Assembly (NCBI RefSeq): GCF_964188315.1
Contig: NC_135667.1
Location: 26,722,001 to 26,786,000 of the forward strand
Length of the DNA stretch: 64,000 nt
From: Podarcis muralis
Lineage: Eukaryota
Reading direction: 5' to 3'
In this document: one piece after another, positions 4,553 to 43,078 of the stretch
Position numbering within the stretch: position 1 is the first letter of the stretch
Layout: each line of letters opens with the position of its first letter
Made by a program: the position numbers and the translations under genes
Notes under the pieces: generated by a model
Database searches by the model: none
The model's input: only the letters and a program-made list of their open reading frames with translations
Told to the model about the DNA's origin: nothing

Positions 4553-5521
4553 CTATGAAACCCTGTTGCTGAATCTTCTGACAGTTTTGAAAAGCACTTC
4601 CTTCACTTCTCTGTTTCTCAAACTGTATATCAGCGGGTTAAGGGTGGGTGTTAGGACGGTGTAGAAAAGGGAGAAGGTTTTGTGTACTTCACTCGGTGTT
4701 ACTGATTCAGGAACTATATAGACGAGGAATATTGACCCATAGAAAAGTGTCACAACAATCAGATGGGAAGAGCAGGTGGCAAAGGCTTTCTGCTGAGCAG
4801 CTTTGGATTTAATTCGCAGGACAGTGAGAAGAATGCAGATGTAGGAGGTTATAGTTAGTAGAAAAGGAGGACCTGTTCCCATAAGCCCAAGAATAAATGT
4901 TACAAGTTTTACTTGGTGCGTATTGCTGCATGAGAGGTTTGCCACTGGATATATGTCACAAAAGAAATGATCAATTTCATTGGGTCCACAGAATGTGAGC
5001 TCCAACATAAAAGAAGTAATTATAGTATTGGTCACTAGGCCACACATCCAAGACGTGAATGCTAACTGGAGGCAGAGTCTACCATTCATAATGGTTGAAT
5101 AGTGCAGAGGTTTGCATATTGCCAAATACCGATCATAAGACATCATGGCCAAAAGATAGCATTCTGTGGCTGCACAGAAACCAAAGAAATAGTATTGTGT
5201 GACGCACCCCTTAATGGATATGGACCTATCCCCAGTAAGGAAACTAGCCAGCATTCTGGGTACGATGGTTGAAATGTAGCAAGTCTCCAAACAGGACAAG
5301 TTCATGAGGAAGAAGTACATGGGAGTATGAAGATGCTGGTCAACTGCAACCAGTAAAACAATTAGGAGGTTTCCAACAAGAGACAAAGCATAGATTGCAA
5401 GGAATAATACGGAGAGGAGAATTCGCAATCCAAGGAAATTGCCAAATCCCAGAAGGACGAATGTTGTAGGGCTTGACTGGTTTCCTCCCAATGCTGTTTG
5501 CAGATGAATCTCAAAGTCATT
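4553..5521 (-). CDS. Olfactory receptor, subfamily A, coding exon 2 (predicted 341 aa with exon 1 at 10276-10332)
   Basis: Intact OR frame (PMYFFL, MSYDRY, HFFCD, KAFATCSSHL, NPLIYSLRN). The ORF-track start 5491 is TTG, not ATG. Acceptor gcatttcag|AAT at 5523-5522, with an in-frame TAA further upstream. Confidence 0.92.
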   Translation of the reverse strand, partial: NDFEIHLQTALGGNQSSPTTFVLLGFGNFLGLRILLSVLFLAIYALSLVGNLLIVLLVAVDQHLHTPMYFFLMNLSCLETCYISTIVPRMLASFLTGDRSISIKGCVTQYYFFGFCAATECYLLAMMSYDRYLAICKPLHYSTIMNGRLCLQLAFTSWMCGLVTNTIITSFMLELTFCGPNEIDHFFCDIYPVANLSCSNTHQVKLVTFILGLMGTGPPFLLTITSYICILLTVLRIKSKAAQQKAFATCSSHLIVVTLFYGSIFLVYIVPESVTPSEVHKTFSLFYTVLTPTLNPLIYSLRNREVKEVLFKTVRRFSNRVS

Positions 5522-6469
5522 CTGAAATGCAATTTGATTAGTGTTAGCTTAGTGACTCTTTCCCCTCCCATTGACAGTCACAAAGCCAGCCACCCAGTAT
5601 GGTCCTATCAGTACTGTTCCACTTAGTAATGGGAGTTGAGTTTTGTATGTTTTGAATGCTCTGACACATTTGTTTGTTCTTGTTTTTAAAACTCAACCCT
5701 CCTTTACACATAGTTGTATAACACCATGATAGGAAGCCTTCTCATAAATATGCTAGTTCCCTCTGTACAAAGCATTTTTTTATGGGGAGAGGCAAGAAGC
5801 CTCCCACTAGCATCACTTTTATCATTGCTACTACTACACATTTGCGTAGCATTAATAATGTGCAGTGCTGTATACATTTCACCCATGTCTCAGTCCTTCC
5901 CCCAGTCTGACAATTTGCAACAAATGAAATACAGTGATGAATGGAAGTAACAGGAGGTAGATAATGCAGGACAAGTTTGGATCAGGAAAAAGATGATGAT
6001 GATGTTGATGTTGATGAGGATGAGGATGATGATATAGCATAAGGACAAAATAAGAGCCCTGCTTCATAAGATCTAAGTTTGATGAACAATCCCAACCCAA
6101 ACATCTGCTCCGAGGTCAGTCTCACTGTATTCAACAGAGCTTATTTCCAGGCAAGTAGGCATAGGGCTGCAACCTTAGTCCAGTACTCAAGATTCACCAG
6201 CTGTCAACCATTGGGAAGCTGTTAAGCAAGACATAGGAGCAATAGTCATCTCCTGTTGTTGCTCTCCAGCAGCTGACTGTCAGTGGCCTACTTCCTCTTG
6301 AAGCCATGAGGACAAGAACATATGAGGATCCTTGCTGGATCAGGCCAAAGACCCATCTAGTCCAGCATCCTATTTTCACAGTGTCCAGCCAGATAACCTA
6401 GGAGAATTCCACAAGTAGCTCATGAGCACAACTGCACTTTTTTCACTTGTGACTCCCAGGCAGCAACTA

Positions 6470-7114
6470 CCGTACTTTTCACACCATAGGACGCACTTTT
6501 CCCGTCTTAAAAACTAAGGGGGAAAGTCTGTGTGTCCTATGGAGCGAATGCAGGGGGGAGGCAGGCAGGAAAAGCCCCCAAGAGCCCCACACAAGCTTTG
6601 TGCGGCTCTTGCAGGCTTTTCCCCAAGAGGGAGAAGGGACTGACACCACCAGCCTTGCACAACCTCTCCAACCAGGGGGAGGCTTCGCAAGGCTAAAGAG
6701 GAAGCCAAGGCAGCGAGCGCGATCCATCCCGTTCACTGCTCTGGCTTCCTCTTTAGCCTTGTGCGCCCCTCCAGCTGCGAGAGGCTGTGCAAGGCTAAAG
6801 AGGAAGCCAGAGCAGCGAGTGGGATGGATCGCGCTCACTGCCTTGTCTTCTTTAGCCGCGCTGGAGAGGTTTAGCTCCTGGCTGGAGAGGTTGCGCGGCT
6901 ATGGATCCCGTGCGCTGTCTTGGCTTCTTTGCTCTTTGGGGCTGGTGGAGGAACCCGGGCTTCCCCCGCAGCCCCGAGAAGCTCTGGGAGAAGCAGACAG
7001 GCTGCACGCAGCCTGTCCGTTGCTCTCTGGGGCTGGGGGGGATAATATTTTTTTCCTTGATTTCCCCCTCTAAAAACTAGTTGCGTCCTGTGGTCCGGTG
7101 CATCCAATAGAGCG
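6470..7114. mobile_element. Tc1/mariner (Tigger/pogo-like) MITE
   Basis: TIRs ccgtacttttc / gaaaaatacgg, TA on both flanks, internal GC-rich direct repeats. Confidence 0.75.
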
Positions 7115-7152
7115 AAAAATACGGTAACATTCATGATATACATTGCTTCATA

Positions 7153-7515
7153 AAGGTAAAGGTAAAGGTACCCCTGCCCGTACGGGCCAGTCTTGACAGA
7201 CTCTGGGGTTGTGCGCCCATCTCACTCAAGAGGCCGGGGGCCAGCGCTGTCCGGAGACACTTCCGGGTCACGTGGCCAGCGTGACATCGCTGCTCTGGCG
7301 AGCCAGCGCAGCACATGGAAACGCCGTTTACCTTCCCGCCAGTAAGCGGTCCCTATTTATCTACTTGCACCTGGGGGTGCTTTCGAACTGCTAGGTTGGC
7401 AGGTGCTGGGACCGAGCAGCGGGAGCGCACCCCGCCACGGGGATTCGAACCGCCGACCTTTCGATCGGCAAGCCCTAGGCGCTGAGGCTTTTACCCACAG
7501 CGCCACCCGCGTCCC
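7153..7515 (-). mobile_element. Full-length Sauria SINE with 13-bp TSD
   Basis: TSD acattgcttcata at 7140-7152 and 7516-7528; A box and B box intact. Confidence 0.92.
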
Positions 7516-7730
7516 ACATTGCTTCATACATTCTCCTAATTGTCATGACTAGTAGTCACTGATAAATAGAAAACTCTCCATGTCAAATTTTATTTTAAAC
7601 CCATTTCATCTAATGGCCATCACCATGTTAACTCAAGACACTGAACTCCTTACATTAAATTTATGTTGTATGACTAAGTACTTTTTTCTGCCTATCCTGA
7701 ATCTTGTCCCCGTCATTGTTCTGCCCGGAC

Positions 7731-8070
7731 ACTGAGGTCCAGCTCCGAGGGCCTTCCGGCGGTTCCTTCACTGTGAGAAACCAAGTTACAGGGAACCAGG
7801 CAGAGGGCCTTCTCAGTAGTGGCACCCGTCCTATGGAACGCCCTTCCACCAGATGTCAAAGAGAGCAACAACTACCAGACTTTCAGAAGACATCTGAAGG
7901 CAGCCCTGTTTAGGGAAGTTTTTAATGTTTAACAGACCACTATATTTTAATATTTTGTTGGAAGCCACCCAGAGTGGCTGGGGAAACCCAGCCAGATGTG
8001 TGGGGTATAAATAATAAGTTATTGTTGTTGTTGTTGTTGCTGCTGCTGCTGCTGCTATTGTTGTTATTAT
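7731..8070 (+). mobile_element. L2-type LINE 3' end with trinucleotide tail
   Basis: agggccttctcagtagtggcacc..tatggaacgccct and gccacccagagtggctgggg signature; (tgt/tgc)n tail. Confidence 0.7.
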
Positions 8071-10275
8071 ATTTCAATAGATGGTGAAACATTATCATTT
8101 TAGAAATTGTCCTGTGCTGAATCCTGCCCCCAAATTCCTAGATAGCTTTTGCCAAGTCAAAAGAGGTTGTATGTTTGATTTCTTTCTTCTTTCTCCAGAT
8201 GCTTGAGAAATTCTTCTGTATTTCATTTTAACAGTTCACATTTACTTACAAGGTGGATGCTGGGTGCATGATCAGTGGAGGCTGGTTTATTAGGGCTAAA
8301 GGGTCATTGCCCTTAGTCTAAGAACCTTAGTCTGCCCTAGGCAGTGGCCAGCAACACTCCTCCTAACTTACTTCCTACTTAGTCCATGTAGTGTTGTCTT
8401 TGTAACAGCAGGAAGGTGAATGGGAACATAACTAGAATAAGCTGGCGCTCTCAGTTGCTGGCTCTGTCTGCACCTACTCTCTGCTTTCTGCCCTACTGGT
8501 CTCACTTGGCAACAGCCACCACTGTGTGTGAGTGAATGTCCTCTTCCATTCTACAGTCACTTATTGGATGTCTGCAGCCTTTTCAGCCAGCACTTCCTCA
8601 AAACCCTAGGATACTCTTGGCTAAGATTTCCTGTAATTGCAGCCACACTGGAAGTTTGCAAAATGCAGGCCAAGAGATACAGTAGGTGATTTATAGAATG
8701 AAATAAAGGACATTCTCAGACACCTTTTGGCCACCTCAAAAACAAATAAGAAGATAAAAAGCATCCCACCCATAAGAATTACAATAAAATTCTCAATCCT
8801 TTGATAATTTTCAAATGAAATTTCTTTTTCTCTATGCAATTTTGAGGTTATAACCCACTATTATAGTTGCTATGTTTGTAAACTAAAAAATACCTTGGAC
8901 ACATAAATCATGCCTGCTGACTCTAGAGAGGGAGGCTATTCATGCATATTTTTTATTAAAAAAACCCCAAAACATACCAGATTATAGTTGGCTGTGCAAC
9001 ACATTCATTCACATTCTCTGAACTTAACAGAGGCATATCCAGTTTGTTGTGTAAATTGGTCCTTTCGCATCAGATAATAGACATATTTTACAGTTAAGGG
9101 AGTAGGTTTCAAATGCTGATTGCCTTTTCCTCCAGAACGATATCACCGAGGCCACATCCACACAATACATTTAAAGCACTATTACACTGAGGACTTCCCC
9201 TCAAAGAATCCTGGGAACTGTAGTTTGTTAAGTTTGCTGAGAGTTGCTAGGAGATCTATATTCCCCTCACAGAACTACAGTTCCAGGAATTCTGTGGGAA
9301 TAGGGGTTTACTTTTAAACCACTCTGAAATTGTAGCTCTATGAGGGGGGTGGCATCTCCTAAAAACTCAGCACATTTAACAAACTACAGTACCCAGGATG
9401 CATAGGGAAGTCATGACCATTTAAGTAGCATAAGAATGATTTAAATGCATGGCGTGAGTATTGCCTGAGTTCTACAGAACACTGTTTCCGCCTTGCTTTA
9501 TAAATTAAACTGTGGATTAATATAAGCAGCTGTACTTAATCAATGTTTGGCAGACATTACAAGTTTTCAGATGGTCTCAAACAAGTTAAATGTTTGGCTT
9601 TTTAATCCCAGTTATATATATAGATATTATAATCCAGAATAGTTGGAGTTAAAGTGGCTCCTTGATTTCTGAAACCCCTCTGAGATTTCTCAGTTCTGCT
9701 GTGCTTCTGAGAAATCCAAAACACTGATACATTTATTGTTGTCCCAGGACATGGTCTGAGGGTAGATGGTGAAGCTAAGCAGATCTGTGTTTGACTGTGC
9801 TTGCATGGGAGCCCTTCTGCCTTGGGTTACATGGTGGAAGAAGGGTGGGATGTAAAATGTAATAAATAATACATTTTCTCTCTGAACAGCTTGCAAAATC
9901 CAAAAACTTGCTCCCAGAATTCTGAACATTGTAAAATTAATCGACCCAGGAAAAGATGTCAGTATGTGTATTGTATGCATTCTTGCCAAATCTAAACCTT
10001 CCTCATAAACCATTAGATTGATGTTCCAAATGAAGACAGGACAGATCCTGTGAACATCATAGATCTTATCTGTATGGAAACAGATCAGATCCCATTTGCA
10101 GAGCAGACCTTTCACTTCCAATCAGCCAGTGTCAAGGTTTACTAAGAAAGCAGCAGAGTTCATTTGTGTGCATATGAAACATTTAAAACTCACATGAAAT
10201 AAAAATGAAATACCCTGCCCCAAATATAGCAGATGGGGATGAAAAGCTACTATGATAGATAACATGAATATTTAC

Positions 10276-10332
10276 CTCTAAAATGATTATATTTCCAGGT
10301 GGAATCTCTGATGTGTTCCATCTGGATTCCAT
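10276..10332 (-). CDS. Coding exon 1 (MESRWNTSEIPPGNIIILE) of the OR at 4553-5521
   Basis: ATG at 10332, 19 codons, donor GAG|gtaaat, phase 0; homologous exon found upstream of all five subfamily A genes. Confidence 0.8.
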
Positions 10333-10339
10333 CTGTAAA

Positions 10340-10950
10340 ATAAGGGTTTCTTCAGTGCCTTCTCAATACTCTCCGCCTGTTTTAGATTATGGCCTCTTGT
10401 CTTGTCTTGTCTTGTCTTGCTTCCATTCAGTAGCAAAAGATTCAAAGTACGATTAATTAAAGGGTTTTGCTTCCATTCAATAGCAAAACACCACCGTGCC
10501 TACTTATTTAAACTGAAACTGATCAAGAAGGATAACTTCAATTCAGCAGCAAAATATCACTATGTACACTTAGCTAAACAGTAAGTGTTCTGGTGGAAAC
10601 TATTTCTACAGATGGATATTCACAATGACTGGGGGAGGAGAACTAAGCAGTCTTGCATGCATTTGGCTTTCTATTATTAATAACTGCAGAACTAAGGAAA
10701 CCCACATTTTCACTATTGGTAGAAGGGGAGGAGTGGGAAAGAAGGGAACCTTTAACCTCAAGGACCCTGTTGCAATCTCAGCTGGCAGTTTTGGGGGTTT
10801 TGAGGTGCTTATAATACTGACCAGGTCTGAGAGCAAGAATAACAGCAAGAATCATGTGGATTAGGTGGCATTCTAGTTCAGAAATCTGTCCCACTTGGCA
10901 TCTTTTAGTGCTTATGGTCTGGGGAGCTAGGGCTCTGCAAAGTCATGCCA
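10340..10950 (-). promoter_or_regulatory. Conserved upstream block (candidate promoter/5' UTR) of subfamily A, copy for the 4553 gene
   Basis: Noncoding blocks such as cagcaaaatatca and tttctaca..tggatatt recur at about 21580-21860, 26320-26640 and, inverted, 33620-33960 and 39080-39470. Confidence 0.5.
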
Positions 10951-11452
10951 AATCCGATGCCTATCTTGTTCTTTTAAGATTCAAAATATCACATATTAAA
11001 GAAGTGCTGGATCCATGAAATTGATGGCAGTCTTCCAGGTTCAGTCCCCTGATAAGAACAAACTTTTCAAAATGACATAAAGTGTGACTCTGTAGTTTGG
11101 AACTCAATGTTTCTACCCCTCCCTGCATCACTCCCCCTTCCCCAGTTTTTTTTTGTTTGTTTTTTAGGTTTTTTTTTAGCTTAACTCTTTGGTTAGCTTT
11201 TATTGTAAAGCAAATCAATTGTGAATGATTTTGAATTATTAAAAACACATAATGTGGGTGGGGGTGGGGAGGAAGGTTTCATTCTTATTTTTAGTGAGTG
11301 AGAATAATTTCCCCAAAGGATGGATTTTTTCCCCACAGTTATGGGCTCTGCCTCCTTTCTTTTAGCAATTTTTTGTGCCACTGGGGAAATGGTAATTCTG
11401 TATTGATTTGTTTTGAATGTTTGTATGTTATGCCAATAAAAGGTTTGATGAT

Positions 11453-12537
11453 TTAGAACCCAAAACTAAGGTACTTTCAAGAATGTATAACTTGCTGTTA
11501 AAATGGAATACTCAGGATGAAACGGTCAAATCAGCTATGATAAAATGGGCGCAGGACATTGGCTATAATATCATGTTTGCTGACTGGGAATGGTTATGGA
11601 CCACTGGTGTGAAATTTACGGCATGCAATGCCCTAAAAGAAAATATTATGAAAATGATATACAGGTGGTACATGACCCCAGTCAAGCTTGCAAAGATATA
11701 TCATTCGCCAGATAACAAGTGTTGGAAATGTAAAGAGACTGAGGGAACATTCTTTCACCTTTGGTGGACGTGCCCAAGGGTTAAGGCTTTCTGGGAAATG
11801 ATCTATAATGAACTGAAAAGGGTATTTAAATATACCTTCCCTAAGAAACCAGAGGCCTTCCTTCTGGGCATTGTTGGCCAAATGGTGCCAAAGAAGGACA
11901 GAACCTTGTTTATGTACGCGACAACAGCAGCAAGAATACTCATCGCAAAGCACTGGAAGACACAAGATTTGCCCACTTTGGAAGAATGGCAGATGCAAGT
12001 GATAGACTACATGGAACTGGCAGAAATGACCGGCAGAATCCGAGACCTGGGAGAAGAGACAGTGGAAGAGGACTGGAAGAAATTTAAAGACTATTTACAA
12101 AGATATTGCAAAATGATTGAATGTTAAAATGATGCAGGAGATAAGGACAATATGGCATTAGTGATAAAGCTGAAAGGAATATGTAAAAGTACTGTATAAG
12201 AAATAAGGGTGAAAAAAGTTAGAATAATATTATGTCAGAACTAAACGAAATGATACGAAGGGAAAAACTGGTGACATAATAGTTGAAATGTATAATAATA
12301 ATAAGATTCAAAAGAGGGTAAGATATTGCTGAATATGATTTTCTAAAAGAGAACACAGAAAAGGGAGATGTGAGGAAGTCAAGAAAGAGGGTTATGAAGG
12401 TAACAAGCTAGAAACAGGATTTTTATGTTTTTCTTTTCTTTTCTTATGTATTTCTATGTATTTTCTTTTGTATTTTCTAAGTACGTGAAATCTGTTTAAT
12501 TGTTTAAAAATTTTAATAAATATCTTTTTAAAAAAAT
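11453..12537 (+). mobile_element. 5'-truncated young L1 (ORF2 C-terminal Cys-rich zinc knuckle, 3' UTR)
   Basis: Uninterrupted ORF 11417-12127 with CWKC..FFHLWWTC motif; 18-bp TSD aataaaaggtttgatgat at 11435-11452 and 12538-12555. Confidence 0.88.
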
Positions 12538-12835
12538 AATAAAAGGTTTGATGATGATTATTTGTACTCAAATGCCATAGTGTGAGGCTTGACCAGTGCA
12601 TTAACTGAAAGGAAAATGCTAAGAATTGTGAAAGGTATAGCATGTATCTTAAACATTTTGCATTGTTGTTGTAGTATTGCCAACACAATCAGAGATCAAT
12701 GATATTATAGAAACAAAGTTCTCAAACAGGAAAATTCACTCACTTCAAGTATCTGTTCCCTTCCTGGCACAGTGAAAACTAAAATAACTTTCCCACGTGG
12801 CTAAACTCTTGCAACAAAGGAATCATTTTCTTAGA

Positions 12836-14191: not shown

Positions 14192-14193
<2 letters not shown>

Positions 14194-14235
<42 letters not shown>

Positions 14236-16936: not shown

Positions 16937-17905
16937 CTATGAAACCATATTTCTGAATTTTATGACAGATTTAAACAGAGCTTCCTTCACCTCTCTGTTT
17001 CTCAAACTATATATGAGGGGGTTCAACATGGGAGTCAAAATGGTGTAGGAGAAAGAGAAGATTTTATGAAGTTCCTTTAAGGTTTCTGATTCAGGGACTA
17101 CATAGACTAAGAATAATGAGCCATAGAAAAGTGTCACAACAATCAGATGGGAAGAGCAAGTGGTGAAGGCCTTCTGCTGGGAAGCTTTGGATTTAATTCG
17201 CAAGACGTTGAGAATAATGCGAACATAGGAAGCCAAAGTCAGTAGAAAAGGGAAACCTATTGCCATATACCCGAGAATAGAAGTTGCAAGTTTTACTAGG
17301 TGGGTATTGCTGCATGAGAGGTTTGCTAATGGATATACATCACAAAAGAAATCATCAATTTCATTGGGTCCACAGAACGTTAGTTGTACTAAAAAAGAAG
17401 TTATGATAGTGTTGGTCACCAGGCCACACATCCAAGAAGTGAATGCTAATTGGAGGCAGAGTTTACCATTCATAATGGATGTGTAGTGCAGAGGTTTGCA
17501 TATTGCCAAATACCGATCAAAAGACATCATTGCCAAAAGATAACATTCTGTGGCTAAACACAAACCAAAGAAATAGAATTGTGTGATGCATCCCTTAATG
17601 GATATGGACCTATCCCCAGTGAGGAAACTGACCAGCATCCTGGGCAGGATGGTTGAAATGTAGCAAGTCTCCAACCCTGACAAGTTCATGAGGAAGAAAT
17701 ACATGGGAGTATGAAGATGCTGGTCAACTGCAACCAGTAAAAAAATTAGGAGGTTCCCAACAACAGACAAAGCATAAATGGCAAAAAACAATACAAAGAG
17801 AGGTATTCTCAATCCGAGGAGATTGCCAAATCCCAGAAGGGTGAATGTTGCAGGGCTTGACAGATTTTTCTTCATTTCTGTTTGGTGGTGAATCTCAGCA
17901 TCATT
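16937..17905 (-). CDS. Olfactory receptor, subfamily A, coding exon 2 (predicted 341 aa with exon 1 at 21421-21477)
   Basis: Intact OR frame; acceptor tttcag|AAT at 17907-17906; internal ATG at 17875 also present. Confidence 0.93.
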   Translation of the reverse strand, partial: NDAEIHHQTEMKKNLSSPATFTLLGFGNLLGLRIPLFVLFFAIYALSVVGNLLIFLLVAVDQHLHTPMYFFLMNLSGLETCYISTILPRMLVSFLTGDRSISIKGCITQFYFFGLCLATECYLLAMMSFDRYLAICKPLHYTSIMNGKLCLQLAFTSWMCGLVTNTIITSFLVQLTFCGPNEIDDFFCDVYPLANLSCSNTHLVKLATSILGYMAIGFPFLLTLASYVRIILNVLRIKSKASQQKAFTTCSSHLIVVTLFYGSLFLVYVVPESETLKELHKIFSFSYTILTPMLNPLIYSLRNREVKEALFKSVIKFRNMVS

Positions 17906-18051
17906 CTGAAATACAATTTTAAAAACATTACTGAGCTTGGAAATCCATCTCATTATTATTTTTCCTCTGATTGATTTTGAAAGTCACATGGGACATCCTT
18001 CCTGGGCCTCTGCATTCTATACTACTTAATAATTATACATTATTGGGAATA

Positions 18052-18205
18052 AGGGCCATATCTCAGTAGTAGAACGTCTTGGTTTTCATCTCCAGATAGA
18101 ACTGGAAGAGAACCTTGCCTGGATCCGTGGAAAGCCACAGCCAGTCCGTATAAAGGATACGAAGCTAGATAGACTGACTGTGGCTGACCTCATATAAGGC
18201 AGCTT
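18052..18205 (+). mobile_element. Squam3-like SINE, internally deleted
   Basis: gggccatatctcagtagtaga head and tataaggcagctt tail. Confidence 0.6.
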
Positions 18206-20961: not shown

Positions 20962-21324
20962 GTAAAAGGTAAAGGTACCCCTGCCCGTACGGGCCAGTCT
21001 TGACAGACTCTAGGATTGTGCGCCCATCTCACTTAAGAGGCCGGGGGCCAGCGCTGTCCGGAGACACTTTCCAGGTCACGTGGCCAGCGTGACAAAGCTG
21101 CATCTGGCGAGCCAGCGCAGCACACGGAAACGCCGTTTACCTTCCCGCCAGTAAGCGGTCCCTATTTATCTACTTGCACCCAGGGGTGCTTTCGAACTGC
21201 TAGGTTGGCAGGCGCTGGGAGCGAACAACGGGAGCGCACCCCGCCGCGGGGATTCGAACCGCCGACCTTTCGATCGGCAAGCCCTAGGCGCTGAGGCTTT
21301 TACCCACAGCGCCACCCGCATCCC
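20962..21324 (-). mobile_element. Full-length Sauria SINE with 14-bp TSD
   Basis: TSD tacgaatcatttaa at 20948-20961 and 21325-21338; highly similar to the 7153 copy. Confidence 0.92.
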
Positions 21325-21420
21325 TACGAATCATTTAAAACCCTCATAAAAATGGAAAATCATGTTTATATGTAGTACATGAAGAGAAATCACTAACAGG
21401 ATGGATTTATAAACATTTAC

Positions 21421-21477
21421 CTCTAAAATGATAATACTTCCATGTGGAAAATCTGATGTATTCCATTTGGGCTCCAT
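21421..21477 (-). CDS. Coding exon 1 (MEPKWNTSDFPHGSIIILE) of the OR at 16937-17905
   Basis: ATG at 21477, 19 codons, GAG|gtaaat donor, phase 0. Confidence 0.78.
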
Positions 21478-21949
21478 AAATAGGATGCAAGTTTCTCTTC
21501 CCTACCCCTCTTCTGTTCCAATCATGTCATTCTAATGTTGGCTCTGGAATCTTCTTTCCAGTTAGTAGCTAACTGTTAGTATGCTCACTTATTTAAAGTA
21601 CAAATGATCAAGTTGCCATGCTTTTATTCAGCAGCAAAATATCAGCAGGTAACCTTACTTGAACATGACTAAATGATCAAGGACATGCTGTTTCTACAAA
21701 TTAATATTTCATTATGGCTAGGGAAAAGCGCTATATACCCTGAAAGCTATGTGCTCACTCATGCCTTGGGGAAGTCATTAGACGCTTCCAAAGCCAAGGC
21801 TCTTAATTAATACTATCTCTTCAGTGCTATGAAGGTACTCACAGCCTATCCTCAACATCCTGAATGAGAAATGCCACCTCACTTCTACTGAAGTTTTATT
21901 TATTAAGTATAGAGACATTAAAATAAAGGAGATAGTGTTTGGACATATT

Positions 21950-26173: not shown

Positions 26174-26218
26174 CTCTGAGACTGTTATATTCCTAGGTGC
26201 GTTCCATTCAGTTTCCAT
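26174..26218 (-). CDS. Coding exon 1 (METEWNAPRNITVSE) of the OR at 23520-24476
   Basis: ATG at 26218, 15 codons (in-frame 12-nt deletion relative to paralogues), GAG|gtaaat donor. Confidence 0.75.
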
Positions 26219-33563: not shown

Positions 33564-34020
33564 AGAATTCTCCTTGAGATGAGTGAGCATCTAACTTTCC
33601 CTGTTTGAGAACTCCCCCCCCCCCCTTTGTCTGCAGTATTGACATCCCATTATGTGAGATAATAGTTTAACAGCTAATGCTGTTAAGCATAAGTTTAAGA
33701 CACTTGGCATAACTCCCAGAATAGCAAATATAGGTAGCCAAACACAGGCAGAAACTGCTTAATGATTTCTCCCAGTCATTGCAAACATCTAGTGATAGAA
33801 GACTTGTATTGGATTATTTAACTGTGTCTAAATAAGTGTAACTACTGATATTTTGCTACTAAATGGAAGCCAGACTTCTTGAACATTTGAACTTTAATAA
33901 GTGCACGTTGATATTTTGTTAGTGGATGGGAGCAAGATTGGAGCAAGACTCCACAGCATCTACCTGGAACAAAACTTGGGAGCACCATAAGGAATCAGAA
34001 GAGAGCTGTGCATCCTAAGA

Positions 34021-34077
34021 ATGGAAACTGAGCTGAACACATCAGAGATTCCACCTAGAAACACAATAATTTTGGAG
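34021..34077 (+). CDS. Coding exon 1 (METELNTSEIPPRNTIILE) of the OR at 37241-38212
   Basis: ATG at 34021, 19 codons, GAG|gtaaat donor at 34078, phase 0. Confidence 0.8.
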
Positions 34078-35116
34078 GTAAATATACATAGTTTCTCATC
34101 CCCATGTGCTATCCTTGGAACAGGGTGTTTCTTTTTTATTTCATGAGAATTTAATATGGTTTATAGGCACCATATTTCTATCAGGTATGTACAGAAACCA
34201 TTTCAAACTCATATGGCAACTCTTATCAATTTCATGGTGAACTGTGGAAGGTGGGAACTGTGGAAGTCTGATCGAAGCTCTGTTTAGATTGCTAAAAAAT
34301 AGAGTGCTATTTTTTCTAGAAAAATAGGTGCCGGTACTCACCCTGAAATTGTTACTGTAAGTGTCACACTTTTTATCAACAACAAAAAGAGGTGCCGGTA
34401 CAGCATACCCTTGAGTGCCCCCTGGAAAAAGCACTGGTTCAGATCAATTGCATTTACTTAATTTGCCTTCCTCTTTATAGCTCAATCACAAGGTTTATTA
34501 GGAAAATATGCATACAATGTATGAAAAGCCATCTTTTACTGGACAGGTCAATTTTAGACTCTTTAGACAACCAGGGATAGCATGTTGGATTTCTCAATTC
34601 AATGCTAGGTACTCATAGTTTAAATAATATTTCATAACATTTGAATATTTTGAATGTACTTCAGTTCTGGCTCAACTGAGTTTGTAGTTTTGACAGTTAC
34701 GTTCTTCATCTTCATTTGGAATCTCGCAATCAATGATGTTTCCAAGCTCCTGATTTTTACCCAGAATTCTGTTCACTTAATATAGGTAATAAGGATCTGG
34801 AGTTACCTTGTTTGATTCAGTGAGACTGTTCTGGAAGAAAATTCAAAATCTATATGTAGTTTACTTCGGGATTGGAGAATGTTTCCTAAGCTAGTGTAAT
34901 AAAAACATTGATAATTTTTACAACAATCAAGGTATTTGGTTCAGCTACTTTTCTCTCTCCCTTCCCCATTTCATTTATTAATCACTTGAAATATCCTGAA
35001 GAATTAAGCATAAAACTCCAGAGATGGATGAGATTGTGTGGATCATTTTTTTTAATGCCATATTTTTGTTCTCTGTAACGAGGAAGGGGAGGAGGCAAAT
35101 GTCCAGTCACCAGTAA

Positions 35117-35117
<1 letters not shown>

Positions 35118-35157
<40 letters not shown>
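35118..35157. repeat. (AC)n microsatellite
   Basis: Seen directly. Confidence 0.95.
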
Positions 35158-35158
<1 letters not shown>

Positions 35159-35599
35159 CCTCCCTGTATCTCCTTCAACTGTAGCCAGTAATCTCACTTT
35201 CAGGTCCTTTCATCCTTCATATTTTCCTGTAGTGTAGGAATAGCTCATGTAGGGCTCTCCAGATATTGTGGACAACTCCCATTATCCCTGACCCTTGGCC
35301 ATATGTACAGGGAGGAGGGATGCATGAGTCTTTCCATTTCAGTTTCTCTCAGTTTTTCATTTTTATACTCTTAAATTTAGTTCTCAACATTTCCATAGCA
35401 ATTTGTGAATTTTAATCATGACATTTCTTTATTATTTTTCTAGAAACATATTTTTTTGGGGGGGGGAATGAATGCAGTTTTAATGAAGATGCTCATTTTT
35501 GCATTTCCATGACACTTTCCTTTTAATATACTTGGTATAAGAACCATATTGCAAAATATGGAGAAGTGTGAACTTTGAAGGACAGTTGGGTTTTTGTCA

Positions 35600-35630
<31 letters not shown>

Positions 35631-36357
35631 TTTTAAAAAATCAAATTAGGTAGTTTCTCATTAAAATCAATTTTCTCCTCCATCTCTAAATAGGGCTGAT
35701 AAGAATTGTAGCCCCAAACCTTTGTTGGACATCACATTGTCTGCGCCAGATTTTTGCTATGATGTCCTTTGGAACAGCCTCCTTGTCTATGGTCAGCAAG
35801 CTCTTTTCATGTGATCAGGTTCTTGGAGTGTTTAACCTATACCAGTGCCCTTCATCTGGGCTTCAGTATAGCTGAAACAAGACACTGGACTAAGGCTACA
35901 ATTGTATGTCCTCTAACCCATTTAGTTCCATTTTAGACTGCAGCTGTAGAAATCATATTAGGAGGAATTGCATTGAACACCAATAATAGAATCAGCACAG
36001 CACAAAAAGGGCATGTATGGAAATAGAGATGGGTGTCTTCAAATATCTGAATGGTTATATCACAGAAGTTAGTCCAATATTCTGTACTGTTAGGGTTGTG
36101 GAATTATTATTATTATTATTATTATTTGACAAAGTAATAATCATAAGTGAATAAGAATAAAAACGTGCACCCCACCACCAAGACCATTCCATTGTAACTA
36201 TCCAACCTCCCAAAAATTCAACACCTCTTGCAATGGCTTGACCCCTTTCCGTTTTAACAGTACAAATTATACAAACACCCTCCATATCTCCTTAAAATCA
36301 TTTCTCCTGCATATTCCCCATATTACCTTAATGGCACATTCATCATTAATAGCTATA

Positions 36358-36593
36358 CAGTGGTACCTCTGGTTACGTACTTAATTCGTTCCGGAGGTCC
36401 GTTCTTAACCTGAAATTGTTCTTAACCTGAAGCACCTCTTTAGCTAATGGGGCCTCCCACTGCTGCCGTGCCATGCGATTTATGTCCTCATCCTGAAGCA
36501 AAGTTCTTAACCCAAGGTATTATTTCTGGGTTAGCGGAGTCTGTAACCTGAAGCGTATGTAACCTGAAGCATATGTAACCTGAGGTACCACTG
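36358..36593. mobile_element. Tc1/mariner MITE
   Basis: TIRs cagtggtacctc / gaggtaccactg with TA TSD. Confidence 0.88.
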
Positions 36594-37240
36594 TATCCCA
36601 CACCTCTTTATACCATTCTTCCATTTTATATTCAGTTTGCTCCTTCCTCTTTCTGGCTATAATAATTCATGCAGCTGTCAATAAATTTGTGAGCAAGTCT
36701 TTCATAGCCTGTGAACCTTCCGCCCCATCGTGAATTGATAATAATGCTACCTCTGGACTTTTGGTCAACTTTAGCACAGTGATTTCTGTAATCTCCTTAA
36801 ACACCCTTTGCAAAATAATAAATAAATCCATTATTCCGTACTAGTTAGGGGTGTGGACTTTAAGGTAACTCCCAACTCTACAATTCTGAGATTCACTGTT
36901 GCGTTTGATTTCTTTATTGGGGAACATACAAAGCAATATCCCATTCATATAATATGTATGGGATTCCCCAATCTTATTCTCAGGATTCCATTCCTGTCAC
37001 TATTGGGAAGAGAAATGGCATGGGTTTCAAATCCAAAATGCTGCGATCATGATTGGGTTGGTGGAGGAAACATGAGAAAGGAGCAGGTAGGACAAGGTCT
37101 AGCAACCTTCTTTCCAGCTGCTTCTCCACCACAAATCTTCCCTTCCCAAAGCTTTTGTGGAGGAGCAGATATCTCTTAAAATACAAATACAAATGTGGCA
37201 ACGTTAGTTTGCTAAAAAAAAATATATTATTGTGTTTTAG

Positions 37241-38212
37241 AATGATGTTGACAGTCATCACCAGCAAACAGCAGTGGGAGGAAATCAATCAAGTCCTTCA
37301 GCATTCATCCTTCTGGGATTTGGCAATCTACTTGAACTGCGAATTCTCCTGTTCATATTGTTGCTTGCAGTCTATGCTCTATCTCTAGTCACGAACTTCC
37401 TGATTGTTTTTCTGGTTGTGGTTGACCAGCATCTTCAAACCCCCATGTATTTCTTCATCATGAACCTGTCCTTCTTGGAGACTTGCTACATTTCAACCAT
37501 TCTCCCCAGGATGCTGGCCAGTTTTCTTACTGGGGATAGGTCCATATCCATTACAGGATGTATCACACAATACTATCTCTTTGGTTTCCTGGCAGCCACA
37601 GAATGCTACCTTCTGGCAATGATGTCCTATGATCGGTATTTGTCAGTATGCAAACCTCTGCGCTACACATCCATTATGAATGGTAGACTCTGCATCCGAC
37701 TGGTGATCACTTCTTGGATGTGTGGCCTGTTGACCAACACTATCATCACTTTACTTATGCTAAAGCTCACATTCTGTGGGCCCAATGAAATTGATCATTT
37801 CTTTTGTGATGTATATCCAGTGGCAAACCTCTCCTGTAACAATACTCAGCTCGTAAAACTTGCAACATTTATTTTAGGAGTGATAGGAACAGGTCCCCCT
37901 TTCCTACTAACTTTGGCATCTTATGCCTTTATTATTTTCACTGTCTTACAAATTAAGTGTAAAGCTGCCCAGTGGAAGACCTTCACCACTTGCTCTTCTC
38001 ATCTAATTGTGGTGACACTTTTCTATGGATCATTATTCCTTGTCTATATAGTCCCTGAAACAGAAACCCTGAAAAGACTACGCAAAACCCTCTCTCTGTT
38101 CTATACCATCCTGACTCCCTTGCTCAACCCCCTCATATACGGTTTGAGAAACAGAGAGATGAAGGAAGCTCTGCTTAAATCTGTCAGAAAATTCAGCAAT
38201 AGAGTTTCATAG
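37241..38212 (+). CDS. Olfactory receptor, subfamily A, coding exon 2 (predicted 342 aa with exon 1)
   Basis: Intact OR frame. The ORF-track start 37274 is GTG. The acceptor tgtgttttag|AAT at 37239-37240 is itself an in-frame TAG, so an ATG must come in by splicing. Confidence 0.92.
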   Translation, partial: NDVDSHHQQTAVGGNQSSPSAFILLGFGNLLELRILLFILLLAVYALSLVTNFLIVFLVVVDQHLQTPMYFFIMNLSFLETCYISTILPRMLASFLTGDRSISITGCITQYYLFGFLAATECYLLAMMSYDRYLSVCKPLRYTSIMNGRLCIRLVITSWMCGLLTNTIITLLMLKLTFCGPNEIDHFFCDVYPVANLSCNNTQLVKLATFILGVIGTGPPFLLTLASYAFIIFTVLQIKCKAAQWKTFTTCSSHLIVVTLFYGSLFLVYIVPETETLKRLRKTLSLFYTILTPLLNPLIYGLRNREMKEALLKSVRKFSNRVS

Positions 38213-39079: not shown

Positions 39080-39470
39080 ATCAGTAAAATGACTTTCCCC
39101 TGGCATGAGTGAACCTGTAACTTTCCGCATCTGAGAACATTTTTCCAGTTCATTTGGCTGGAGTATCGTTGATATCCTATTATGTGAGCCTTACCATGCT
39201 AATAGTTTAAGATGTTTGGCATAGCTCCCAGAATTACTGATACATAGAGCCAAGCATAGGGGAAAAAATTGATCAGTGCCATCCCCCCAGTAACTGCAAG
39301 TATCCATCTACAGAAACATTTGTGCTTAATCATTTAACCATATTTGAATAAGTGCACCTGCTGATACTCTCCTAATAAATAGAAGCAAGACAAATTAGGA
39401 GCTTTTAGAAGAGCACACTGATATTCTGCTACTGTAAGGAAGCAAGACTCCACAACATCCACCTGAAGCA
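39080..39470 (+). promoter_or_regulatory. Conserved upstream block of subfamily A with O/E-like and homeodomain-like motifs
   Basis: tcccctggcatgagt (tccccaaggcatgagt in the minus-strand copies), cc(c/t)attatgtgag and ggcata.ctcccagaat are shared among paralogues. Confidence 0.45.
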
Positions 39471-39511
39471 AAGATGGTTTGGATAGAGAAGCAGCAAAAC
39501 AGAGACTTGTG

Positions 39512-39577
39512 ATGGAACCTGATGGAACAGTGATGGAACCTGAATCTAACACATCAGAAATTCCAATCATTTTTGAG
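39512..39577 (+). CDS. Coding exon 1 (MEPDGTV-MEPESNTSEIPIIFE) of the OR at 42110-43078
   Basis: In-frame ATGs at 39512 and 39533, GAG|gtaaat donor at 39578, phase 0. Confidence 0.77.
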
Positions 39578-39719
39578 GTAAATATTTATGCATTAGCTTT
39601 TCATCCGTATGTGCTGTATTTGGAACTGTGGGACTGTCTGATGGGAAGTGAAAGATGTGCTCCACAAATCTGTTTGTTCTCATTTTTGTTCAGATTGACA
39701 GTTACTTAATGTGCCTTCC

Positions 39720-39775
39720 CCTTCCTTCCTTCCTTCCTTCCTTCCTTCCTTCCTTCCTTCCTTCCTTCCTTCCTT
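39720..39775. repeat. (CCTT)n microsatellite
   Basis: Seen directly. Confidence 0.95.
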
Positions 39776-40199
39776 TCTCTCTTTATTATTGTACATAATA
39801 ATAGTGTTGCTCAGTCCTCAAGTTTATTAAGTTTATTAAGAAAGTCATAGAGTTGGCAAGCATATGAAATGAGATATGCTACTGAAACAATTAATTTTAA
39901 ACACTTTGGAATACTGGAGGCAACACTTTGAATTTCACAGAAAACAACTCCAGGACTAGGTGCTCAGAGTTAAAATAATGAAAATAATGTAAATGTTAAT
40001 ACTATAGTGATTGTATTAATAGAGATGACAGCAGTGGGACATGGGACTTCACTGTTTACCAGAGTTTCTTCTCCTTCCCCCATAGCTACATCACACCAGG
40101 CCCATTTTCTTTCATTCTCCAATTCCAGCCAAAAAAGAAAAGGTTGTCTATTGCCTGTTCAGCACTCACTCCAAGTGATTGACTAGAAGTCCTGTGGTA

Positions 40200-40470
40200 A
40201 ACATGTGGTAGAATGCTGCCTGTAAAAAAAAGGAGGGAAGATGTGATAGCTCTCTTCAAATTTTTAAAGGTATAACACAGAGACGAGGGAGCAGACTTGT
40301 TCTCCGTTGTTCCAAAATGTAGGACCAGAAAAAATTACAGGGAGGAAGATTTCAGCTAAACGTGAGAAGAAACTGTGAAATAAGAGCTGTTTCATAGTGG
40401 AACATATGTACCAACTTGAACATTTAGCTTTGTGGAATGTGCACTGTTGAAGGTGCTAAAGAACATGTGT
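40200..40470 (+). mobile_element. Old CR1 fragment
   Basis: Degenerate gatatgatagc..ttcaaata..gacttgttctc..gaagatttcagctaaac motifs. Confidence 0.55.
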
Positions 40471-40790
40471 TCCACACTTGTAAGAAATCAATAGTGAAAG
40501 AAATCTAGAGCAGCGGCTATACTTTGGAATGCCCAACCTACTGATATCTGACAGGTATCTGTGCTATACTCTTTTCAATGCCTGCCTAAAATTTCTTTGT
40601 TTAGCCAAGCCTCCTCAGATATGTAGCAAAAACAAATGTGTCTTCTTTTTTAGCTATTGATGATTTCAGTCATCTTTTCACTGTTTTTAAATACCTGCTT
40701 TGAGCTGTTTTGCAGACAATCTTAATGTTTTATTTCATGCTTTTGTAAACTGCTAAGAGGTATTCTTACAATCAAGCCGTATGCAAGGCA

Positions 40791-40791
40791 T

Positions 40792-40830
<39 letters not shown>

Positions 40831-40832
40831 TT
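40791..40832. repeat. (TTTA)n microsatellite
   Basis: Seen directly. Confidence 0.95.
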
Positions 40833-41424
40833 TGCAAATTTAAAAAAAAACAGACTGCCATGGGAAATCCTGGTCTAACCTCTATTATTTACGCACAGAC
40901 CGGGCACGCATCTGTCTTCAGTGCTGTGCTTGCATCCTGTGTAACAGTGTGTGTCCTAATACTGTGAATATCAGCACACAGCACACTGTGTCACCAGCAA
41001 AGTTTGATTACAGCATCCTGTAGGAAAGTCTGGTGTTCCACACAGAAAACATTCCCTTATTCTAAGGTAAACTTTTAATTCACGAAACAAGTGAGTCATT
41101 TCTCACTAAGGTCATGTCCTTTCAACTACCAACTGGGCTGGATAAATTAATGAAACTGTCCCTTTCATTTCATGCAATAAACCAACCTTTCTTCCTTCCT
41201 CTGGTGCATGAACATCTTGGGGCATACGGTTAAGCGTAGAAACACATATTCACAGCAAAAGCACATTTTAACTTTGACAGAAGATCCTAAACCTGTTTGG
41301 ATTGTATGTTGGAAAACATATGAGTGCTGGACACACACATGAGTTTGTAACATCTGCATTGCAGATCTTTTCCTGATTGAAGGGGAGGTGGTGGACTAGG
41401 TAAGCCGCAAAGCAATCTTTACAA

Positions 41425-41560
41425 CAGGCATGGCCAAATGTGGCCCTCCAGATGTTTTGGGACTACAATTCCCATCGTCCCTGACCACTGGTCCTGTTAG
41501 CTAGGGATGATGGGAGTTGTAGTCCCAAAACATCTGGAGGGCCAAGTTTGGCCATGCCTG
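41425..41560. mobile_element. Palindromic hAT-type MITE (136 bp)
   Basis: Near-perfect fold-back caggcatggccaaa..tttggccatgcctg; 8-bp TSD ctttacaa at 41417-41424 and 41561-41568. Confidence 0.88.
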
Positions 41561-42109
41561 CTTTACAATCTGGTGATTTTCCATTGTGCAAGTTTTCTGC
41601 TTCCAGGGAAAATATTTTGTATTACCTGGAAGCACCCAAAACAGTATCCCCCTCCCTCATACTTTTGAAGGAGGTACAATCCTGTCTCAGGATTGTACAG
41701 TCTTACTTTCTCATTACATCACTTTTCCTAGTGGGAAGTGCAGCAACATAGTTCTGGAATCCCACATTTGGGAATATTGCCTAGTTTCAAGGAGGAAACA
41801 GGGGAAAGCACACAGGTAGGAAATGGTTAAGCACGATCCTTCTCTCCAAATGCCTCACCTCTGCAAATCAGCCCTTCTCAATGGCCCTAACTCTAACCCT
41901 TTCTATGCGAGAAGTGCTTCAAAGGAAAAGAAGTAGGGTCGTGGCAGAGCTTTTAAAACACATGATACTCCATGACCATTATTTTGAAATAATACAGCAT
42001 GTGAAAACCATATTGGATACCTGGATCCTGCCAACTTTAGCTTTGAACATCAGTGGATGGTGAAACAGGAGTGTCCAAGCTCACTAAAACTTGTCAAATT
42101 GTATTTCAG

Positions 42110-43078
42110 AACGATGTTGAGATTCATCATCAAACAGAAATAAAGAAAAATATGTCAAGCCCTACAACATTCATCCTTCTAGGATTTGGTAATCTCCTTG
42201 AACTGCGAATCTTCTTCTTTGTATTCTTTTTTGCCATCTATGCTTTGTCGCTTGTTGGGAACCTCCTAATTTTTTTTCTGGTTGTGGTTGACCAGCATCT
42301 TCAAACCCCCATGTACTTCTTCATCATGAACCTGTCCTTCTTGGAGACTTGCTACATTTCCACCATCCTCCCCAGGATGCTGGTCAGTTTCCTTACTGGG
42401 GATAGGTCCATATCCATTATGGGATGCATCACACAATATTATTTCTTTGGTTTCTTGGCAGCTACAGAATGTTATCTTCTGGCCATGATGTCCTATGACC
42501 GGTATTTGGCAATATGCAGACCTCTGCACTACTCAACCATTATGAATGGTAGACTCTGCTTCCAGTTAGCAATCACTTCTTGGATGAGTGGTCTGTTAAC
42601 CAACACTATCATAACATCTCTCATGGTAGAGCTCACATTCTGTGGGCCCAATGAAATTGATGATTTCTTTTGTGATGTATATCCAGTGGCAAACCTTTCT
42701 TGTAGCAATACTCACATAGTAAGAACTGCAGTTTTTGTACTTGGGCTGATGGTGACATTACCCCCTTTTCTACTAACTTTGGCCTCCTATATCTGCATTA
42801 TTTCCACTGTCTTGCAAATTAAATCCAAGGTAGCGCAGCAAAAGGCCTTCTCCACCTGCTCTTCTCATCTGATTGTTGTGTCACTTTTCTATGGGTCAAT
42901 ATTCCTTGTCTATATAGTCCCTGAAACAGAAACACTGAAGAGACTACACAAAATGTTTTCTCTGTTCTACACCATCCTGACTCCCATGCTGAACCCCCTC
43001 ATATACAGCTTGAGAAACAGGGAGGTGAAGGAAGCTCTGTTCAGATCTGTCAGAAAATTCAGCAGCAGAGTTTTGTAG
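42110..43078 (+). CDS. Olfactory receptor, subfamily A, coding exon 2 (predicted 337-344 aa with exon 1)
   Basis: Intact OR frame. The ORF-track start 42053 is GTG. Acceptor gtatttcag|AAC at 42108-42109. The canonical Met position reads ATA (42140); another ATG at 42152. Confidence 0.93.
   Translation, partial: NDVEIHHQTEIKKNMSSPTTFILLGFGNLLELRIFFFVFFFAIYALSLVGNLLIFFLVVVDQHLQTPMYFFIMNLSFLETCYISTILPRMLVSFLTGDRSISIMGCITQYYFFGFLAATECYLLAMMSYDRYLAICRPLHYSTIMNGRLCFQLAITSWMSGLLTNTIITSLMVELTFCGPNEIDDFFCDVYPVANLSCSNTHIVRTAVFVLGLMVTLPPFLLTLASYICIISTVLQIKSKVAQQKAFSTCSSHLIVVSLFYGSIFLVYIVPETETLKRLHKMFSLFYTILTPMLNPLIYSLRNREVKEALFRSVRKFSSRVL

Follow-up and report, generated by a model that had tools for sequence, protein, structure and literature searches.

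In human and mouse, some genes for olfactory receptors (ORs) are known to have a split coding region, and neighbouring paralogues that obtain their start from an upstream Met are among the cases described (Barnes et al. 2020, BMC Genomics 21:196; PMC7055050). The first class distinguished there comprises supposed start-less pseudogenes that have a Met in an adjacent upstream exon, for example Olfr1174-ps, Olfr1175-ps and Olfr1177-ps. Multi-exon OR genes are also reported from cichlids and other teleosts, according to the citation of Azzouzi et al. (2014) in PMC10869828. OR repertoires are usually counted by single-exon open reading frames (ORFs) beginning with Met (e.g. PMC2758906), and in PMC10869828 extra exons were sought only where no ORF had been found. 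We analysed a stretch of 64,000 nucleotides from the lizard Podarcis muralis (NC_135667.1, positions 26,722,001 to 26,786,000; hereafter the window) that carries five related OR genes, A1 to A5, forming subfamily A. An earlier note on this DNA had proposed that each of them is split, with a hidden N-terminal exon (exon 1) upstream of the main exon. Our results make it very likely that A1-A5 are indeed two-exon class II OR genes.

Results

Structure of the subfamily A genes

Every exon-1 coordinate given in the earlier note (for A5, 39533-39577) was reproduced exactly, together with the peptides, donors and acceptors. The predicted parts of the five genes, read from the sequence, are as follows; a slash in a motif marks an exon boundary, and E is the expect value of a profile match.

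10276-10332 (-): A1 coding exon 1, MESRWNTSEIPPGNIIILE, donor GAG/GTAAAT, profile E 5e-27; the Lacerta agilis orthologue is intact, MEPRWNTSEIPPGNIIILE
5522-10275 (-): A1 intron, 4754 nt, phase 0, including the non-conserved alternative exon 6190-6249
4553-5521 (-): A1 main exon, 322 codons and stop; TTG at the usual Met position
21421-21477 (-): A2 coding exon 1, MEPKWNTSDFPHGSIIILE; Lacerta and Zootoca orthologues intact
17906-21420 (-): A2 intron, 3515 nt, 91-92% identical to Lacerta and Zootoca, with mostly frame-breaking indels
16937-17905 (-): A2 main exon, 322 codons and stop; usual Met kept
26174-26218 (-): A3 coding exon 1, METEWNAPRNITVSE; a 12-nt deletion took out NTS, and a new NIT sequon lies downstream
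24477-26173 (-): A3 intron, 1697 nt
23520-24476 (-): A3 main exon, 318 codons and stop; usual Met kept, Val in Lacerta
34021-34077 (+): A4 coding exon 1, METELNTSEIPPRNTIILE; RefSeq/Ensembl models of P. muralis (P0032) and the Lacerta model P0126 make use of it
34078-37240 (+): A4 intron, 3163 nt
37241-38212 (+): A4 main exon, 323 codons and stop; GTG at the usual Met position, and a stop immediately 5' of the acceptor
39512-39577 (+): A5 coding exon 1, MEPESNTSEIPIIFE; homologous ATG at 39533 and an extra in-frame ATG at 39512
39578-42109 (+): A5 intron, 2532 nt
42110-43078 (+): A5 main exon, 322 codons and stop; ATA at the usual Met position

In each gene, exon 1 begins with ATG, runs for 15-19 codons without a stop and ends in GAG/GTAAAT. 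The acceptors, TTTCAG in A1, A2, A3 and A5 and TTTTAG in A4, stand directly before positions 5521, 17905, 24476, 37241 and 42110, and a CTAAC/CTAAT-like branch-site match is found about 25 nt 5' of each. The distance from exon 1 to the acceptor is 1.7-4.8 kb, and all five joins are in phase 0. The main exons are uninterrupted from the first base after the AG to the stop (318-323 codons), and the two-exon ORFs, bounded by GT-AG and free of stops, come to 333-342 codons in total. A linker of 10-11 codons, consensus NDxEIHHQTE, separates exon 1 from the receptor body. At the usual position of the start Met, A2 and A3 have ATG, and the codons in A1, A4 and A5 are TTG (Leu), GTG (Val) and ATA (Ile). 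The usual Met is lost in these three genes, and exon 1 would therefore be obligatory for them. The exon-1 ATG is preceded, 8-10 codons further 5', by an in-frame stop in A1, A2, A3 and A4. When the window was searched with a DNA profile of exon 1, five copies and no more were found; the five subfamily-B ORs further along it, which start with an ordinary Met, have none next to them.

The translations of A1-A5 carry the class II OR motifs PMYFFL in transmembrane segment 2 (TM2), MxYDRYLAICxPL (TM3 and second intracellular loop), KAFxTCSSHL (TM6) and NPLIYSLRN (TM7). The two-exon orthologues P0032, P0010 and P0036 score 141-174 bits against Pfam 7tm_4 (cut-off 27), and precomputed matches to PF13853 (7tm_4) and PF00001 are present on all 120 listed homologues of the A1 main exon, the closest being a Podarcis raffonei protein with 99% identity.

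The length differences of 12, 12 and 3 nt to which the note had drawn attention are real and in frame. The 12-nt deletion in A3 exon 1 is common to Lacerta A3 (METEWNIPMNITVSE). The extra ATG of A5 comes from a 21-nt insertion at 39512-39532 (+) (ATGGAACCTGATGGAACAGTG) that duplicates the exon-1 start 7 codons upstream; this insertion, absent in both P. raffonei A5 copies, keeps the frame, as does a species-specific 12-nt deletion relative to P. raffonei.

Evidence for a coding exon 1

Twenty-one main exons could be matched with an exon 1, several species contributing related, non-independent copies. The usual Met is missing in 12 of these 21, where L, V, I or T takes its place or where it is deleted, as in snakes, whose linker is 9 nt shorter so that the usual Met position is gone altogether. 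Between Met-less copies, including copies from different infraorders, the ratio of non-synonymous to synonymous rates (omega) of the main exon is 0.10-0.28. Such purifying selection marks the Met-less copies, as judged from their sequence, as functional genes, for which a start codon must therefore come from elsewhere. Every main exon examined opens at the AG (the 21 paired ones and two others, whose exon 1 could not be located or falls beyond the locus), and in 15 of the 21 copies there is no in-frame ATG between this AG and the last in-frame stop, 0-24 codons further 5'.

Another explanation must be weighed here, namely that exon 1 is a conserved non-coding exon, in the 5' untranslated region (UTR) or close to the promoter, with an incidental ORF. 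A2 and A3 would then start at the usual Met, and A1, A4 and A5 would be young pseudogenes or would initiate at near-cognate TTG, GTG or ATA codons. Recent pseudogenes are excluded by the omega values, Met-less copies being found in geckos, a skink, snakes and lacertids, and snakes have lost the usual Met position entirely.

The frame of exon 1 itself bears on the same question. An intact ORF is present in 19 of the 22 exon-1 matches. In these 19 copies, from 10 species, frame 0 contains no stop in 339 codons, against 28 in 320 and 24 in 320 codons in the two other frames, and chance is therefore not the explanation of the open frame. Moreover, we count at least eight independent indels in exon 1 and linker, and all are multiples of 3. 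In exon 1 they are the 12-nt deletion of the A3 lineage, the 12-nt deletion and the 21-nt insertion of the window A5, and a deletion of 6 nt in geckos, to which one Paroedura copy adds another 6 nt; in the linker they are 3-nt insertions in A4 and in Rhineura, the 9-nt deletion of snakes and a 3-nt deletion in one Paroedura copy. Among small indels in the introns of the same genes, 18 of 89 are multiples of 3 (18 of 54 when only those of at least 3 nt are counted). Eight in-frame indels out of eight at a background of one-third give P ~1e-4, a figure obtained by hand arithmetic with the independence of the events judged by eye.

The exon-1 ATG is kept in 20 of 21 contiguous (non-relic) copies. 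The single loss concerns a Paroedura copy in which the exon-1 ATG has become ATA and a 5-nt deletion after cAG/AATGA has put the ATG of that motif in the receptor frame. A Met-bearing Sceloporus copy has an exon 1 with frameshifting deletions and a TGA at the penultimate codon, and in Zootoca the A3 exon 1 (L007:3979-4313) is split by a ~230-bp insertion resembling a short interspersed element, starting CAGTGGTGCCTCGGGTTAAG, with no A3 main exon between it and the A2 exon 1. In this set of sequences, exon 1 has decayed only where it is dispensable, either because the gene has its own start codon or because the main exon is deleted; it is intact in 12 of 12 Met-less copies and in 7 of 9 copies with their own start.

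Constraint on the extension

Several observations weigh against a translated exon 1. The peptide is weakly constrained, with a pooled ratio of non-synonymous to synonymous differences (pN/pS) of 0.51, next to 0.53 for the linker and 0.30 for the receptor body. Close orthologue pairs differ in exon 1 by 4 synonymous and 14 non-synonymous changes (pN/pS ~0.9), codon-position entropy is only weakly periodic (0.65, 0.66, 0.86), and divergence between Podarcis and Lacerta or Zootoca is ~6% in exon 1 and ~8% in the introns. Conservation is partly at the DNA level, since from gecko to lacertid it includes the third positions of AAC ACA TCA, and a regulatory signal acting in DNA or RNA may overlap the coding sequence. 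Furthermore, the extension may be optional in A2 and A3 because these genes retain the usual Met together with an in-frame read-through ATG. Gnomon, NCBI's automatic gene predictor, picked other first exons for orthologues of A1 and A5. Finally, the association between a broken exon 1 and possession of an own start (2 of 9 copies versus 0 of 12) goes in the expected direction, but with these small numbers it is not significant (Fisher p ~0.17, by hand arithmetic), and the copies are non-independent.

Given the weak peptide constraint and the weak periodicity, the main targets of selection seem to be the ATG, an uninterrupted frame, the donor, the retention of a sequon and the core ME.EWN(T/I)(S/T)EIP. 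A non-coding exon 1 would also account for the nucleotide-level conservation, the weak codon periodicity and the pN/pS near 1 between close orthologues. The conserved block immediately upstream and the non-coding state of the homologous turtle element, both described below, point the same way, and in-frame upstream ATGs are found in 14-22% of ordinary ORs (Barnes et al., PMC7055050). It leaves unexplained the absence of frame-0 stops, indels that without exception keep the frame, a main-exon frame that opens exactly at the AG and an ATG whose lone loss was matched by the gain of another. We consider a non-coding exon 1 very improbable.

For A1-A5 we infer the splice junctions and the initiation codon from conservation, and translation and glycosylation are likewise predictions. 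On this basis the split coding region put forward in the earlier note is supported: squamates at large share the exon with its donor, phase and acceptor, purifying selection acts on main exons that lack the Met, and indels keep the frame.

Gene models and alternative first exons

In models of the window genome A1 is a 255-aa stump (P0121), A2 starts from an internal Met (312 aa, P0021), A3 does likewise (308 aa) and A5 has 355 aa with another exon, so that all four miss exon 1, as had been expected. The exon is thus hidden as far as these four models are concerned; however, it was already present in RefSeq/Ensembl models of 15 species, and A4 exon 1 is used exactly by P. muralis XP_028558736.1 / A0A670JIE3 and by Lacerta XP_033024649.1. 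Elsewhere, the A1 protein begins MYEAMYIMN/ND... in an older release, MNYVSK/ND... in Lacerta and MTIAPMSCLTASQWLTAGESW/ND... in P. raffonei and Zootoca, and three different invented beginnings of A5 occur among the models.

If some of these models were right, other first exons or acceptors would truly be used: 6190-6249 (-) for A1, an upstream acceptor or another exon for A5, and a read-through start at an intronic ATG for A2 and A3. Such beginnings are found in Gnomon models P0001, P0123, P0130, P0132 and P0134, the alternative A1 exon (MTIAPMSCLTASQWLTAGESW) is nearly identical in the P. raffonei and Zootoca proteins, and a read-through ATG is found in Tiliqua as well as in the lineages of A2 and A3. 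Each nevertheless meets an obstacle. The A1 alternative, read as MTIAPM[ST]CLTASQWLTAGESW in the P. raffonei and Zootoca models, ends in the window with TGA/GT where their proteins have Trp. It cannot code here because TGA replaces this codon, provided that the codon, inferred from the proteins, is a TGG directly before the GT donor; nor does it have any paralogous counterpart, being unique in the window. The alternative-acceptor reading of A5 contains stops in the window, and the read-through start is possible in only 6 of the 21 copies. None of these alternatives is conserved beyond lacertids, in contrast to exon 1, which is conserved across Squamata. We find it scarcely credible that they are the beginnings truly used.

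Two Gnomon isoforms of Zootoca vivipara, P0128 and P0026/P0129, have a common first exon (...METELNTSRNTIILE) and bodies that are A4-like and A5-like, respectively. It may be that a single exon 1 is joined to one or another of the neighbouring OR exons, or the two isoforms may be an artefact of gene modelling. A bolder variant of the two-exon layout, in which one first exon and promoter would serve alternative OR coding exons, is suggested only by these two models.

Distribution across Squamata

The earlier note had ascribed the split layout to a lizard clade. The layout was borne out and the restriction was not, at least two sister OR subfamilies sharing it across all the major squamate lineages sampled. 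When the 120 best homologues of the A1 main exon were surveyed, 16 of them (RefSeq, Ensembl or Gnomon proteins, from 15 squamate species) had the exon-1 peptide and linker at their N-terminus, and the turtle, crocodilian and bird homologues among the 120 began at the usual Met. Examples are Rhineura, MGPELNTSEVPPANIIILE/NGLEIHHQQTEM; Tiliqua, MELEWNTSKTPPTNGLLFE/NDFKIHWQTET; Paroedura, MGHEWNTSEIPPLSILE/NDLISHHQAEI; and Thamnophis, MEHECNTTEILLRNINNSK/NHLTFHQQ. In the DNA of these four and of Eublepharis the layout is identical, with ATG...GAG or AAG/GTAA(A/C) in phase 0, an intron of 1.7-3.3 kb, the acceptor TTTCAG or TTTAAG/AAT and the same branch-site region. The Thamnophis copy (L003) has Cys in place of the conserved Trp (MEHECNTTE). 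The loci of Lacerta agilis, Zootoca vivipara and P. raffonei contain orthologues of A1-A5 with intact exon-1 copies. Genes of Varanus and Sceloporus annotated as single-exon 312-aa ORs have unannotated exon-1 copies 2.7-2.9 kb upstream, that of Varanus being intact (MEDDWNISKIPPRDTIISK/GTAAAG).

Altogether, 10 further loci, from 10 species, share the ATG, the donor, the phase and the acceptor. Exon 1, donor, phase and acceptor are found in geckos, a skink, an amphisbaenian, lacertids, a monitor, an iguanian and snakes, and the core ME.EWNTSEIP remains recognisable from geckos to lacertids. For one Met-bearing Rhineura copy (L001:5397), no exon-1 match was found within the 5.4 kb upstream, the exon being lost or further away. 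Judged by this distribution, exon 1 is at least as old as the common ancestor of geckos and all other squamates.

A sister subfamily, C

The window contains a sixth OR, at 1281-2237 (+), which belongs to the sister subfamily C. It has a strong acceptor (ttcttttcctgcag/CAACTGCAA), a first coding base at 1281 and no Met before TM1. Relatives of this gene in three species have a related coding first exon upstream, of the form MGNE..IPSIHP.N...E/GTAAAG:

L009:16277-16346: subfamily-C exon 1 of Sceloporus, subfamily-A profile E 6e-6
L010:15869-15953: subfamily-C exon 1 of Varanus, subfamily-A profile E 1e-3
L005:17981-18087: subfamily-C exon 1 of Eublepharis, matched by a second profile, derived from the copies of Sceloporus and Varanus

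No subfamily-C exon 1 was found in the 1.28 kb of the window available upstream of the gene, and the exon 1 of this gene probably lies upstream of window base 1.

The sequon and its possible role

Exon 1 carries an N-x-S/T sequon in all five window copies, in agreement with the second sequon predicted earlier; it is NTS in four of them and NIT in A3, where it sits a few codons past the lost NTS, as it does in Lacerta A3. The usual OR sequon (NQS, NLS or NMS) follows in the main exon. Among the intact copies of all species 17 of 19 have the exon-1 sequon, the two without it being Paroedura_c (NTP) and Eublepharis_b. Snake exon 1 (Thamnophis L003; proteins P0037, P0046, P0050, P0057 and P0066) has extra sequons, NINNS and NISNS. 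In the two-exon proteins the 7tm_4 match starts at residue 59-62, which leaves about 50 residues ahead of TM1. An AlphaFold2 (AF2) model of a two-exon orthologue, poor overall with a mean confidence score (pLDDT) of 54, shows residues 1-49 as low-confidence coil and then seven helices.

How much of this matters to the receptor can be argued either way. Exon 1 could be translated and yet have no function beyond supplying a start after loss of the usual Met, with no part in glycosylation, trafficking or ligand access. This would fit the pN/pS values, the length that varies between 15 and 19 codons with large in-frame deletions of the proline-rich middle, the two intact copies without a sequon and the coil of the weak AF2 model. 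It fits less well with the presence of a sequon in nearly all copies, the replacement of NTS by NIT in A3 and the sequons added in snakes. The exon-1 ORF also remains intact in most copies that have their own Met, and its core has stayed recognisable. We regard a functionless extension as a real possibility, short of an even chance.

If the extension does have a function, receptor export is one place to look for it. The first 20 residues of rhodopsin, used as a tag, improve the surface expression of many ORs (PMC3698168), and OR51E2 without its N-terminal N-glycosylation site fails to reach the membrane (PMC13486327). By analogy, it is plausible that the extra N-glycan would aid folding or export as the rhodopsin tag does. 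The likeness between exon 1 and the rhodopsin and Lucy tags (PMC3698168) is that of a short peptide ahead of the receptor's own N-terminus, the rhodopsin tag having, like exon 1, about 20 residues. The tags differ in being artificial. Lucy, moreover, is a signal peptide that is cleaved off; exon 1 has a polar start and no signal-peptide character.

The upstream block and other sequences in the window

Exon 1 is directly preceded by a conserved block of about 270 bp:

10333-10632 (-): conserved block, putative proximal promoter, 5' of A1 exon 1, with a counterpart 5' of all five exon-1 copies

Within it is an element of ~55 nt (TTTAAATAAGTG...TGATATTTTGCTGCTGAATGGAAGCAAG), present twice in tandem in lacertids and Rhineura and once in the skink, the geckos and a snake, about 100-270 nt 5' of exon 1 (e.g. 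at 10430-10600 (-), 21580-21750 (-) and 33750-33920 (+)). The core, ATTTTGCTGCTGAATGA, can be aligned to skink and geckos, and the ~55-nt element may be a promoter element. O/E-like sites (TCCCNNGGGA, at most one mismatch) occur upstream of exon 1 at the background rate, 0.11 per 500 nt, and homeodomain sites there are scattered and non-conserved, without any excess.

Two long ORFs in the window are unrelated to ORs, one at 11417-12127 (+), between A1 exon 1 and the A2 gene, and the other at 52750-53586 (-), which carries reverse-transcriptase-like sequence typical of a fragment of a long interspersed element (LINE). Both are probably transposon remnants.

Discussion

We propose the following scenario for the expression of these genes. 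Transcription probably starts just upstream of the short exon 1, which would provide the start codon and 15-19 codons containing an N-x-S/T sequon. A phase-0 GT-AG intron of 1.7-4.8 kb would be spliced out, and the frame, open in the sequence, would run on through the 10-11 codon linker into an ordinary receptor body. The predicted product is a receptor with two sequons in an extracellular N-terminus that exceeds the usual length by about 30 residues. A2 and A3 retain both possible starts, and at the minimum the extension would serve to supply a start codon.

Two turtle sequences bear on the origin of this layout. In Emydura, the OR most similar to subfamily A shares the acceptor motif of the squamate genes, caaattgtgtttcag (L011:2290-2330), 18 nt before its start Met. 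In Mauremys mutica (L012:17397-17497), a search of 34 kb with the profile gave an exon-1-like element (E 5e-5) 1.15 kb 5' of an OR, with ATG and GT aligned to those of the squamate exon, a TAG in the short ORF and another in the linker. The Mauremys case is a lead, a single locus whose gene is not close to subfamily A (58% identity). Given this look-alike exon with its stops and the acceptor motif, the squamate exon 1 is probably a 5'UTR exon turned coding. The scenario would be that an ancestral non-coding 5' exon, followed by a 5'UTR intron, became coding in the squamate stem when the exon-1 ATG and the receptor came to share an open frame; the start Met used until then would have become dispensable and been lost repeatedly, as in A1, A4 and A5 here and in the Met-less copies of other species. 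We also considered exon 1 as a relic of the coding start of another OR, given its resemblance to turtle N-termini such as MADGEWGNQTSITEFILLGF. This found no support, since 21 exon-1 peptides, aligned locally with 28 ordinary OR N-termini, scored no better than shuffled peptides did (p 0.06-0.96).

A fuller proposal is that, after recruitment of exon 1 in the squamate ancestor, subfamilies A and C, and perhaps others, came to carry a leader of about 30 residues that is N-glycosylated and alters folding, traffic or ligand contact. We advance it tentatively and think it rather unlikely to hold in full. Were it true, single-exon OR counts in squamates would be systematically wrong and the leader would be a built-in counterpart of the rhodopsin tag. 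Whatever its role, such counts would cut short or mislabel an entire group of receptors that is old and maintained by selection. A short exon-1 profile, which recovers what we take to be the true start in every squamate lineage tried, would be a simple annotation fix. The case would also illustrate, with the help of an outgroup, how a 5'UTR exon turns coding and the original start codon becomes expendable, and it offers a natural N-terminal leader for OR trafficking studies.

No principle is overturned by these results, because split ORs are already established in mammals; what is new is the squamate instance of a phenomenon known in human and mouse. A full-text search, with subscription journals outside its coverage, found no paper on squamate split ORs. 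None of the human names that RefSeq borrows for these genes (OR10A7, OR2AP1, OR6B1, OR11A1 and OR11L1) is in the split-OR list of Barnes et al. (PMC7055050), and on this ground the squamate layout, which belongs to a different lineage from the mammalian cases, is of independent origin. Teleost multi-exon ORs, compared here through the citation only, are alike in having a coding region that extends beyond one exon and differ in belonging to other OR groups and other lineages.

The human and mouse split ORs (PMC7055050) are the closest parallel. There, too, the intron lies within the extracellular N-terminal region and a short upstream exon holds the start codon, and the introns are of comparable size, with a mean of 3.4-3.8 kb against 1.7-4.8 kb in A1-A5. 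Orthologues and paralogues share the junction and the Met, a split and a single-exon start coexist in some genes, as in A2 and A3, and single-exon pipelines misclassify such genes. The mammalian genes are supported by RNA-seq, whereas the squamate ones are known here from their DNA. In squamates, on the other hand, entire subfamilies throughout an order use one homologous exon (subfamily A, with a related exon in C), a second sequon comes with this exon, and what appears to be its non-coding precursor is visible in a turtle.

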